From the IMG/VR virus record IMGVR_UViG_3300037087_000760, positions 1 through 64,000 of that record: a stretch of 64,000 bases of DNA. One strand, written 5' to 3'. Shown in pieces: positions 10,559 to 12,598 of this stretch (positions are counted from its first letter, which is position 1; each line of letters opens with the position of its first letter). A program made the translations under genes and the position numbers. The notes under the pieces are model-generated. The model did no database searches. It was not told where the DNA came from and worked only from the letters and a program-made list of their open reading frames with translations.

Positions 10559-10630
10559 TAGCGGGGGCAGGATTCAAACCTGCGACCTTTGGGTTATGAG
10601 CCCAACGAGCTATCTCTGCTCCACCCCGCA
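10559..10630 (-). tRNA. tRNA-fMet(CAT)
   Basis: GGG/CCC anticodon stem, U1:U72 mismatch; D loop GA with T loop TTTGAAT. Confidence 0.9.
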
Positions 10631-10635
10631 ATATA

Positions 10636-10884
10636 TTATTTCAATTCATGTCTGCACAATGGACATTCTTTAATTTTTATCAACCAATGAATAGTTCTCA
10701 CTACCGTTTTTTCTGGGTCATCAAAACACACCTTTTCACCATCCCAAATTCCTACGATTGATGTTTTCACAGTTTTACCATTAACTCTTTTTATGTTATG
10801 GTATTGAACTAAATCACCTTTCTTAATATCATCTAATTGTTTACCAATCAGATTTCCGTAATTGTCGTATTTACTTTCTTCCAT
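10636..10884 (-). CDS. Hypothetical protein inside tRNA cluster
   Basis: 82 aa ORF with own TAnnTTTG promoter. Confidence 0.65.
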   Translation of the reverse strand: MEESKYDNYGNLIGKQLDDIKKGDLVQYHNIKRVNGKTVKTSIVGIWDGEKVCFDDPEKTVVRTIHWLIKIKECPLCRHELK

Positions 10885-10888
10885 TTTA

Positions 10889-10920
10889 CAAAGATATAAA
10901 TAAATATTCTAATTAAAAAA
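10889..10920 (-). promoter_or_regulatory. Bacteroidota-type promoter (TATCTTTG with upstream T-run)
   Basis: Matches -7 consensus TAnnTTTG. Confidence 0.7.
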
Positions 10921-10926
10921 TCATTG

Positions 10927-10999
10927 AGATCGGAGAGGGAATCAAACCCCCGTCTCTGAGGTTGCAGCTCAGCACCTATTTACACTCGGCCATCCGACC
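10927..10999 (-). tRNA. tRNA-Cys(GCA)
   Basis: CTGAG-CTGCAAC-CTCAG arm, U73. Confidence 0.8.
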
Positions 11000-11004
11000 A
11001 TTTG

Positions 11005-11077
11005 AGCGATAAGTGGGGGTCAAACCCACGACCTTCAGCTTGGGAAGCTGACACTCTATCAACTGAGCTATTATCGC
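11005..11077 (-). tRNA. tRNA-Gly(CCC)
   Basis: TCAGC-TTCCCAA-GCTGA, U73. Confidence 0.9.
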
Positions 11078-11130
11078 ATCCGTTTGACACATCCTTTGAC
11101 ATCACCCTCTCTCCGTTATATCAAACAGCG

Positions 11131-11202
11131 AGCGAGTAATCAGAATCGAACTGACATCATCGGTATGGTAAGCCGATACACTACACATTGTGCTATACTC
11201 GC
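11131..11202 (-). tRNA. tRNA-Gly(ACC), 31:39 mismatch
   Basis: TCGGC-TTACCAT-ACCGA, Gly-type acceptor, U73. Confidence 0.75.
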
Positions 11203-11277
11203 GAATCAGTACCCGCACTTTCCGCCTTAATTATTCCCTGTTACACTGCGGTTAGGGAGTTGGTTATGATAGACCTG

Positions 11278-11360
11278 AGCGGGAGAAGGGATTCGAACCC
11301 TCACCTGAAGTTTGGAAGACTCCTATGCTAGCTTACGCGACCGTTAAACACCACTCCCGC
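11278..11360 (-). tRNA. tRNA-Gly(TCC) with D-loop insertion
   Basis: GGAGT-CTTCCAA-ACTTC; 19-nt D loop containing GC-GTAA-GC. Confidence 0.8.
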
Positions 11361-11371
11361 GAGTGATTTTG

Positions 11372-11442
11372 AGCAGATAATGAGAATCGAACTCACATCA
11401 AAAGATTGGAAATCTCTTACACTACCATTGTGCTATATCTGC
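11372..11442 (-). tRNA. tRNA-Gly(TCC)
   Basis: AGAGA-TTTCCAA-TCTTT, U73. Confidence 0.9.
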
Positions 11443-11448
11443 GTAAAA

Positions 11449-11553
11449 GGTCAGTATGTCGAATGTATTCGGACTGATTTTCGTTTTGCACATTCCTAAT
11501 CATCTGTCTTAACATCTCAGTTCACCGCCATTGTGCTACCGCGTTTACTGACC
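11449..11553 (-). ncRNA. Unknown tRNA-sized structured RNA
   Basis: Closed by GGTCAGTA/TACTGACC; carries D-arm-like TAGCACAATGG; fills the gap between two tRNAs. Confidence 0.45.
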
Positions 11554-11554
11554 T

Positions 11555-11629
11555 TGGAGCGGGATGCGGGATTTAAACCCGCGACCTGAAGTTTGGTAAA
11601 CTTCCGCTCTATCACTGAGCTAATCCCGC
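11555..11629 (-). tRNA. tRNA-Gly(ACC) with encoded CCA
   Basis: Perfect GAAGT-TTACCAA-ACTTC arm, U73-CCA. Confidence 0.9.
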
Positions 11630-11717
11630 GTGGGAGGCTATCTAAACTCTTTGACCCAATCAGATTTCTCCTGTCATGAGTTAACTTCGCCTTATTAGTT
11701 TTTCGAATGTTTTTTAG

Positions 11718-11789
11718 TAGCCCCGGCGGGAATCGAACCTGCATCCAGAAATTAGAAGTTTCTTGTTCTATCCATTGAACTACGGAGCC
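11718..11789 (-). tRNA. tRNA-Arg(TCT)
   Basis: AGAAA-CTTCTAA-TTTCT, canonical cloverleaf. Confidence 0.9.
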
Positions 11790-11838
11790 ATACTTTATAT
11801 AAACTATTTACCACCATTAAGTTTAATATTAATTATTG

Positions 11839-11916
11839 TAACCCTGAAGGGATTCGAACCCTCATTTTCATCCGTTATGCACAATCGAGTTTAGAAAACT
11901 CAGCCATTACAGGGCT
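11839..11916 (-). tRNA. D-armless tRNA-Arg(TCT)-like RNA with 22-nt variable region
   Basis: Acceptor AGCCCTG/CAGGGTT, TGAGT-TTTCTAA-ACTCG arm and T arm intact; only TAATGGC between acceptor and anticodon arm. Confidence 0.6.
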
Positions 11917-11921
11917 ATTTG

Positions 11922-12003
11922 TACCGATGGAGAGATTCGAACTCTCACTTCCGATGGAAACAAGTTCCTAAAACTTGCGTGTCTACCATTCCACCACACC
12001 GGC
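11922..12003 (-). tRNA. tRNA-Leu(TAG)
   Basis: CAAGT-TTTAGGA-ACTTG, class II variable arm, A73. Confidence 0.9.
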
Positions 12004-12029
12004 TTAAAAAGTTAAATAAGTTGTGATAT

Positions 12030-12124
12030 TGTACACCATACCCAACCCAGAGTCGAACTGGATTAGTTGGGGTCTCGAACCCCGCTTCACACAACCACCT
12101 ACTACCGTTCAGTATTATTCAACC
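12030..12124 (-). ncRNA. tRNA-derived element with two T-arm-like hairpins
   Basis: GGGG-TTCGAGA-CCCC and CCAG-TTCGACT-CTGG plus D-like TACT-GAACGGT-AGTA. Confidence 0.5.
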
Positions 12125-12128
12125 TTAG

Positions 12129-12198
12129 CAGTACAAGCAGGAATCGAACCTACATCCACCCTCTACTGAGGGTACTCTTTCCATTAAGCTACTGTACT
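12129..12198 (-). ncRNA. tRNA-like RNA lacking an anticodon loop (AGTA tetraloop)
   Basis: Acceptor, D and T arms canonical; CCCTC-AGTA-GAGGG in place of anticodon arm; G73. Confidence 0.75.
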
Positions 12199-12262
12199 TA
12201 CACATCAATTTTATTCTAGCTTATTATGATGTGATTTACACTTTTGATGTAAATATCTTTTA

Positions 12263-12330
12263 GTACTCTAAAAGGATTCGAACCTATACTCCTCGCTTAC
12301 GCGAGTGTGCTACCATTACACCATAAAGTC
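12263..12330 (-). ncRNA. tRNA-like RNA lacking an anticodon loop (GTAA GNRA tetraloop)
   Basis: GTGT-AATGGTA-GCAC D arm, CTCGC-GTAA-GCGAG, TTCGAAT T loop. Confidence 0.7.
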
Positions 12331-12430
12331 AACTTTCGTCATTGACACTGACATATCATTTCGGAAAGAACACATATTTTACTCCTTTCTGATTGTCAGA
12401 TCTTACTCGTTTCAAATTCCAGTGTTTTTG

Positions 12431-12503
12431 CAGGCAGTACGGGAGTTGAACCCGCTCCGAACGCCGTGACAGGGCGACATCTTAACCGTTTGACCTACTG
12501 CCT
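12431..12503 (-). tRNA. tRNA-Asp(GTC)
   Basis: CT-GTC-AC loop, G73. Confidence 0.85.
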
Positions 12504-12521
12504 ATGTAGGGGAACATTCTG

Positions 12522-12598
12522 CGGGCCCAGTGGGATTCAAACCCACCTGTTATTCCTGATCGACAGTCAGGTAGACACATCCAGCATCTCCTGAGCCC
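12522..12598 (-). tRNA. tRNA-Asp(GTC), divergent
   Basis: CCTGA-CTGTCGA-TCAGG, 8-nt variable loop, T loop TTTGAAT, G73. Confidence 0.75.

Follow-up and report, generated by a model that had tools for sequence, protein, structure and literature searches.

The tRNA array in the first 64 kilobases (kb) of the IMG/VR virus record IMGVR_UViG_3300037087_000760 (positions 1 to 64,000, referred to here as the window) contains genes in which the G19-C56 pair of the tRNA elbow, taught as nearly invariant, is replaced by A19-U56. The T-loops of these genes read TTT in place of TTC, and their D-loops read GA in place of GG, apart from a tRNA-Cys with G-U-A. Across the whole 210,983-bp record U56 is present in 6 of the 67 tRNA genes called by ARAGORN, with C56 in all of the remaining genes. 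Comparison with other viral and cellular tRNAs demonstrates that positions 19 and 56 covary as a base pair, and that A19-U56 is a recurrent natural variant in both viruses and cells.

The A19-U56 pair in six tRNA genes

Positions 19 and 56 were read from the Rfam alignment, from the loops called by ARAGORN and from gap-free ortholog alignments; a MAFFT alignment of 43 of the record's tRNAs placed GG in two registers. Five of the six swapped genes are among the 14 tRNAs of the window, which lie on the minus strand at 9.4-12.8 kb. The initiator tRNA-fMet(CAU) (10559-10630; A19 at 10613, U56 at 10576), called by ARAGORN and scoring 62.4 bits against the Rfam tRNA model RF00005, shows the features of a bacterial initiator, with U1 and U72 unpaired, GGG/CCC flanking a CUCAUAA loop, and the initiator trait A11-U24 in its D-stem (gAGC/GCUc). 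The tRNA-Gly(CCC) gene (11005-11077; A19 at 11059, U56 at 11022) scores 65.6 bits and the tRNA-Gly(ACC) gene (11555-11629 including an encoded CCA end, aligned by the Rfam model at 11558-11629; A19 at 11612, U56 at 11575) scores 67.5 bits. In these three tRNAs the model places A in the G19 column and U in the C56 column, bearing out what a reading of the DNA made from its letters alone (the sequence-only reading) had noticed as GA together with TTT. A tRNA-Cys(GCA) of the array, denoted type B (10927-10999; A at 10981, U56 at 10944; 50.8 bits), has the D-loop gagtG-U-Aaata, with an extra U between G18 and A19, and the T-loop TTTGATT. Outside the window, tRNA-Arg(ACG) at 72554-72628 of the record has aactGAata/TTTGAAT and scores 58.7 bits. 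All five of these genes pass the 29-bit gathering threshold of RF00005.

The sixth gene, an Asp(GUC)-like tRNA of 78 nucleotides (nt) with an unusual D-arm (12521-12598, minus strand; A19 at 12580, U56 at 12539), was called by ARAGORN only, and RF00005 gave no match to it even at E<=1. However, gap-free orthologs occur in four related phage contigs (L385, L386, L387/L388), all with G19 and TTC, and the element and its double change are therefore real; it is best described as a conserved but atypical tRNA rather than a standard member of the family. The paired change that had been thought probable for this gene is thus confirmed, as the orthologs read GG/TTC where this copy reads GA/TTT.

Relative to the canonical elbow (G18-Psi55, G19-C56, T54-A58), the cloverleaf, the 7-nt T-loop, G18, T54, T55, A58 and G53-C61 are all kept, and the 19-56 pair is still Watson-Crick but is A-U in these six genes. 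Each of the six retains TTT-R-A and the G-C closing pair, in a record in which T54 is present in 66/67, A58 in 67/67 and G53-C61 in 65/67 tRNAs, and, with scores of 51-68 bits, the swapped tRNAs rank among the best-formed of the array. Their pairwise likeness of 64-72% does not exceed their likeness to C56 tRNAs, which rules out recent duplication as the source of the set. At least 14 runs of peat metagenomes, from many studies, contain the stretch, and contigs from four of these runs showed 0 differences from it, only identical copies being recovered, with no strain variation. Sequencing or assembly error behind the changed letters is ruled out by these identical contigs from independent runs.

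Covariation and frequency in viruses and cells

To place these counts, a viral control sample was collected with the scan TAGCTCAGN{1,3}GATAGAGC, which yielded 464 tRNAs from 118 loci, its matches being mostly GG-A20 Arg tRNAs. GG/TTC accounts for 448 of these tRNAs, and TTT was seen in only 2, whose D-loops both contain GA, so that U56 is significantly enriched in the record (6/67 versus 2/464, Fisher p=7e-5). A second scan of viral contigs used a U56 T-arm pattern, AGGTCGNNGGTTTRAMYCC, that left the D-loop unconstrained; 79 of the 91 tRNAs called from it have GA and no GG. The 676 unselected neighbouring tRNAs on those loci include 636 with these combinations, namely 610 GG/TTC, 21 GA/TTT, 2 GG/TTT and 3 GA/TTC (p=5e-34), confirming the suggestion of the sequence-only reading that the two changes are paired and recurrent. 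When the same T-arm pattern was applied to one genome per prokaryote species, 70 of the resulting 75 cellular tRNAs had GA. The survey that had been proposed to look for a lack of covariation therefore found strong covariation, with the single-change GG/TTT form present at low frequency in both viral and cellular samples. Where a viral contig carries several U56 tRNAs, its tRNA array is large.

Cellular carriers comprise Helicobacter pylori isolates, some Bacteroidales, Saccharibacteria (Ala), a Mycoplasma (Mycoplasma haemolamae, Pro) and DPANN archaea. The H. pylori genomes (L264, L273, L295, L316) have two chromosomal A19-U56 tRNAs, Pro-GGG and an Arg, and in some Bacteroidales species (L258-L366) the carrier is tRNA-Arg(CCG). 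In these otherwise normal tRNAs the covarying pair is the same, and their organisms have ordinary RNase P and ribosomes; the presence of chromosomal carriers in Helicobacter pylori, Bacteroidales, Saccharibacteria and a Mycoplasma implies that bacterial machinery tolerates the pair. They differ from the phage in being rare and confined to 1-2 isoacceptors per genome, whereas the phage has six, including the initiator. Among 300 other, evenly sampled genomes of Bacteroidota, the probable host phylum (see below), the U56 pattern was absent (0 matches), whereas its C56 version gave 99 matches in 40/300 genomes; the record itself contains 3 U56 and 2 C56 matches. A19-U56 is thus rare in the probable host phylum, and the equal host frequency for which the sequence-only reading had asked the survey to look was not found there.

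These data bear directly on the idea that the swapped genes are non-functional copies decaying in a redundant array, with the pairing a coincidence of AT-biased mutation. The record does contain many duplicate and odd tRNAs as well as tRNA-like fragments (11285-11341, 12263-12330), and has a GC content of 30.6%, but the two changes are found jointly far more frequently than singly, the swapped tRNAs score highly and keep every other invariant position, the initiator is among them, and they are conserved across phages whose EF-G proteins are only 77-82% identical. Decay is largely refuted by this covariation and conservation, and we regard it as very improbable.

History of the swap among related phages

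Relatives of the phage were obtained through the elongation factor EF-G in a large protein database and the contigs belonging to it. The nearest EF-G proteins (72-83% identity) are encoded on phage-like contigs, one of which is the 735-kb genome LR756503.1 (77% identity), a member of the Mahaphage clade with a predicted Bacteroidetes host (Al-Shayeb et al. 2020, PMC7162821). This host prediction, the second-tier EF-G matches (~55% identity) to Bacteroidales and Bacteroidota proteins, and a TonB-dependent receptor encoded in the record together make Bacteroidota the probable host phylum. The record resembles the Mahaphage arrays (LR756503.1, LR745206.1, LR756500.1; PMC7162821) in its close EF-G, in its RNA ligase, in the way EF-G, RNA ligase and tRNA array adjoin, in the number of tRNAs (about 60 per genome) and in odd tRNAs that have orthologs there, the Asp-like tRNA included, and on these grounds appears to derive from a huge phage akin to LR756503.1. 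It differs from them as a 211-kb peat fragment with its own swapped set, the fMet and Asp-like swaps being unique to it.

The record was compared with LR756503.1 and LR745206.1 through their tRNA clusters (59 and 58 ARAGORN tRNAs, respectively) and with five other relatives through the neighbourhoods of EF-G. The fMet swap is derived on the phage's own branch, as the Met tRNAs of contig L391, LR756503.1 and LR745206.1 all have GG/TTC (compared at L391:31, W01 L395:2477 and W02 L394:7913), and so is the Asp-like swap, for which the four relatives have GG/TTC. The other four swaps are inherited. The LR756503.1 ortholog of Gly-CCC (L393:12001, 80% identical) has agtGAta/TTTGAGT; for Arg-ACG the D- and T-loops of LR756503.1 are identical, including A19 and U56, although every stem has been rewritten (69% identity); the nearest relative of Cys type B (L389:1157) has cGAatt/TTTAAAT and C38 in common, with GG/TTC in the type B tRNAs of LR756503.1 and L386; and the phage tRNA nearest to Gly-ACC at 11558-11629 is Gly-GCC of LR756500.1 (79.5% identical), with agtGAta/TTTAATT. 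Further swaps are found only in the relatives, namely in Arg-UCU and a long-armed Thr-UGU of LR756503.1, both GG/TTC in this record, and in Gly-UCC of LR745206.1. GA/TTC intermediates are represented by a tRNA-Asn of the record (156751-156823), whose LR756503.1 ortholog has GG, and by two tRNAs of LR745206.1.

These comparisons show at least eight separate swaps among roughly 250 tRNA genes of the clade, and the swapped state persists over long divergence, as in Arg-ACG and Cys type B. Because four of the six swaps come from shared ancestors, the repetition characterises the clade and has built up over a long period. The earlier proposal that several isoacceptors acquired the same change thus stands as far as recurrence in the clade is concerned, but in this phage only the fMet and Asp-like changes arose on its own branch.

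Turnover of the 19-56 pair and its interpretation

Twenty-seven reciprocal-best tRNA pairs between the record and LR756503.1 gave a measure of how fast the 19-56 pair changes relative to ordinary helices. Stem pairs are changed on both sides in 28% of cases, on one side in 4% and not at all in 68%, whereas position 56 differs in 4/27 ortholog pairs (15%). Turnover at 19-56 is therefore about half that of the average helix pair, and there is no excess rate that needs explanation. A-U makes up 33% of stem pairs in the record and 9% of 19-56 pairs; G-C is still preferred at this position and A-U is tolerated.

The best reading, to which we give a probability of roughly 60%, is a near-neutral, shape-preserving compensatory exchange at 19-56 in the fast-evolving, redundant tRNA genes of huge phages. 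In working phage tRNA genes, the elbow's one Watson-Crick tertiary pair would pass from G-C to A-U by two transitions via a single-change form; the flat outer face of the elbow, on which RNase P and the ribosome stack, would be preserved, and hence the cost would be low. The frequency of the exchange in the clade would follow from the very fast evolution, high redundancy and constant compensatory helix rewriting of AT-rich huge-phage tRNA genes, with 19-56 behaving as a somewhat more constrained helix pair. We infer that the swap is close to neutral, and the swapped tRNAs are probably expressed and charged.

Published work on elbow recognition is consistent with such a low cost. For three RNA readers of the elbow, RNase P RNA, the L1 stalk and T-boxes, recognition relies on stacking against the flat pair (PMC4810234). 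A Thermus thermophilus pre-tRNA-Gly carrying G19A and C56U, the same two substitutions as in the phage, is processed with wild-type kinetics by PRORP3, a protein-only RNase P (PMC4797305), and either A19:U56 or C19:G56 restores charging of mitochondrial tRNA-Ser(UGA) by SerRS (PMC10412605). As the engineered A19:U56 mutants keep both processing and charging, it is the shape of the pair and not its identity that is read. They are laboratory constructs acted on by eukaryotic or organellar enzymes, whereas the phage pair is natural, recurrent and long kept.

Several observations fit a neutral exchange less well, and we count them against it. The number of swaps per genome is uneven (6/67 in the record, 4/59 in LR756503.1, 1/58 in LR745206.1, at least one in LR756500.1), with a single swap in about 54 tRNAs of the EF-G neighbourhoods of the other relatives, and rate alone may be insufficient to explain this uneven enrichment across the clade. 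Arg tRNAs are over-represented among viral A19-U56 carriers (7/42 versus 16/634 for the others, near-duplicate lineages included), which a purely neutral process does not predict. The GC content of viral contigs has a weak effect, with a median of 0.396 for those with U56 and 0.415 for controls, and U56 contigs span 26% to >60%. Proteins that bind the elbow form hydrogen bonds with base edges, making discrimination between A-U and G-C conceivable (PMC4810234), and some T-loop modifications depend on C56 as a determinant (PMC7912444), which drift alone leaves unexplained. AT pressure as the main cause was rejected on account of the weak effect of contig GC. In Arg tRNAs, A19 adjoins the identity base A20.

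In a second explanation, A19-U56 is an adaptive mark: an elbow protein that reads base edges would treat A19-U56 phage tRNAs unlike the G19-C56 tRNAs of the host. The reader might belong to the host, as a tRNA nuclease or a modifying toxin from which the phage tRNAs escape, or might be a phage factor that prefers A19-U56. The strong enrichment over both the probable host phylum and other viral tRNAs agrees with this, as do the long retention in Arg-ACG, Gly-CCC and Cys, the RNA ligase beside the arrays of the clade, which fits a conflict over tRNA cleavage (PMC7162821), the hydrogen bonding of elbow bases already mentioned, and the precedent of phage tRNAs that escape tRNA nucleases by sequence changes (PMC11464382). 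Yet the swap is present in only 6-9% of this phage's tRNAs, the isoacceptors that carry it differ among relatives, its rate is below that of ordinary helix pairs, and published assays with elbow readers found A19:U56 mutants to be neutral (PMC4797305, PMC10412605); a CCA-adding enzyme and TruB were not found in the 211-kb record.

A further point against such a mark is that the tRNA-targeting defences looked up (PARIS, Schlafen, Cas12a3, OLD and Retron-Eco7) cut the anticodon arm or the 3' tail; the elbow is not mentioned in the Schlafen and Cas12a3 papers, and the literature searched on such defences contained none that reads the 19-56 pair. The tRNA-Lys of phage T5, directed against PARIS (PMC11464382), and known anticodon-loop variants resemble the swapped tRNAs in that a phage tRNA differs from that of the host at a site a nuclease might read, but these escapers are changed in the anticodon arm and a nuclease has been identified for each. 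Overall, an adaptive mark is unlikely, and its more specific form, a self-mark by which certain phage tRNAs, the initiator among them, would evade an undescribed elbow-reading factor of Bacteroidota or be favoured by phage translation factors, is somewhat less likely again. The selective escape from an elbow-reading defence that the sequence-only reading had drawn from the recurrence is not supported by it.

A third explanation attributes the exchange to stability: the two hydrogen bonds of A-U would loosen the elbow, suiting cold peat or lake water, or offsetting G-rich T-stems or a missing modification. The swapped tRNAs of the window have GC-rich T-stems and an overall GC of 51-59%, the role of C56 in T-loop modification is compatible with it (PMC7912444), and environmental metagenomes, peat among them, are the source of the phage and its relatives. 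Against it, no partner feature is shared consistently by the carriers, whose loop sizes and position 57 vary; Arg-ACG is swapped at 43% GC; and carriers also occur in gut, rumen and Helicobacter genomes. Such tuning is accordingly improbable, though less so than decay, and near-neutral compensatory exchange accounts best for the observations.

Implications

As it stands, A19-U56 in phage tRNAs is a modest, well-explained curiosity. Elbow variants are not described by Al-Shayeb et al. 2020 (PMC7162821), and no description of natural A19-U56 in phage tRNAs was found in the literature searched. It nevertheless represents one specific replacement of the elbow pair that is accepted in nature, arises repeatedly in phage arrays and some bacteria, and can last. 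The genes offer naturally occurring variants with which to distinguish elbow readers that need base identity from those that need only shape, the candidates being RNase P, ribosomal protein L5, the L1 stalk, IF3, T-loop modifying enzymes and possible tRNA-targeting defences. They also carry a warning for annotation, as A19-U56 genes score lower under covariance models and identity rules that are tuned to GG/TTC. If the swap were adaptive, the elbow would be a new site of phage-host conflict over tRNAs.

The record and its gene neighbourhood

The record, of which the window forms the first 64 kb, has a GC content of 30.6% and a CheckV completeness of 71%. Its tRNA genes, 67 by ARAGORN and 67-70 above the Rfam threshold by Infernal, are grouped in six clusters. 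Directly downstream of the array in the window, Pfam identifies genes for EF-G (7222-9252, minus strand) and an RNA ligase (PF09414; 6430-6903, minus strand), and synteny in contigs L385-L392 places the same pair beside tRNA arrays in related huge phages. IMG/VR labels the record a provirus, although it looks like a piece of a free huge-phage genome. Its gene content resembles that typical of huge phages which interfere with translation (window 6430-10238 and 27538-28524; record 99198-100817, 146079-147851, 151758-153890 and 186487-188043), including EF-G, the RNA ligase, a Mom-like protein, a radical SAM enzyme, a TROVE (Ro60-like) protein beside a tRNA-Met, NAD synthase, the TonB-dependent receptor and an ADP-ribosyltransferase domain. 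In one relative (L390, 8554-9237) a release-factor gene with PCRF and RF-1 domains lies in two pieces directly upstream of EF-G, which may reflect a programmed frameshift or a broken gene. Megablast of the tRNA array against phage records gave nothing close, no IMG/VR relatives were found via EF-G or via a 252-residue protein (14478-15236), and none of the 21 loci found for the Mom-like protein had an adjoining tRNA array.

Other tRNAs of the array

Eight of the nine other ARAGORN tRNAs in the window, all on the minus strand, are GG/TTC. They include tRNA-Cys(GCA) type A (9400-9474, GG with TTCGAAT), Gly-UCC (11372-11442), Arg-UCU (11718-11789), Leu-UAG (11922-12003), a tRNA with an odd loop (12129-12198) and Asp (12431-12503). 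The ninth, a second tRNA-Gly(ACC) (11131-11202), reads aatGUGta/TTCGATT, lacking GG but retaining C56, and its reciprocal best match is Gly-GCC of LR756503.1. The statement of the sequence-only reading that tRNAs keeping GG keep TTC consequently holds for these eight, with the GUG/TTC gene falling outside it; the swaps in Cys type B and Arg-ACG had been missed.

The same Gly(ACC) gene shares a G-N-G motif in place of GG, with a normal TTC and as if a base had been inserted between G18 and G19, with seven other tRNAs of the record: GCG at 98414-98489, 156572-156649, 157342-157414 and 157666-157738, and GAG at 91069-91144, 91154-91229 and 169469-169543, in addition to its own GUG. The motif is also present in the short Leu tRNAs of relatives (aatagcgtag, aattgcgtag). 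A change from G34 to A34 is seen three times in the record, in the Gly(ACC) genes at 11131-11202 and 11558-11629 and in Leu(AAG) at 169819-169901, for which the nearest huge-phage relatives are Gly-GCC and Leu-GAG.

Two further elbow variants were noted. A tRNA-Trp of the record (91320-91391) combines the D-loop aacAGTA with the T-loop TGCGAAT, and agtAGTA/TGCGAAT occurs in two viral contigs of the control scan (L100 1092-1168, L103 10119-10195); positions 18 and 55 may covary as a second pair of the elbow. T-loops that read ATCGTTA or ATCGTAA, with A54 and U58, reverse the intraloop U54-A58 pair; this reversed pair was counted 4 times in LR756503.1, 8 times in LR745206.1 and in 5/464 and 13/676 of the other viral tRNAs, with 0 in this record.

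The architecture of tRNA classes also seems to be swapped, which may be more unusual than the elbow exchange. Well-formed tRNAs of 81-92 nt with a hairpin variable arm bear Met, Val, Thr, Glu, His, Lys or Asn anticodons, beside copies of normal length (window 10357-10445; record 70817-70903, 71243-71328, 73120-73203, 89071-89154, 90879-90963, 91234-91316, 156996-157087 and 157419-157505), and three Leu tRNAs are only 75 nt, without the long arm (record 169169-169243, 169253-169327 and 169469-169543). Such forms are present in LR756503.1 and LR745206.1 too; the arm of the Thr tRNA is a UUCG hairpin with compensatory changes between the phages. Finally, the arrays contain a partial tRNA (27 bits), a 39.7-bit tRNA missed by ARAGORN, a weak match of 100 nt, a tRNA with a shortened anticodon loop and one with an 8-nt anticodon loop (window 11285-11341, 12263-12330, 12610-12709 and 12129-12198; record 90792-90874).

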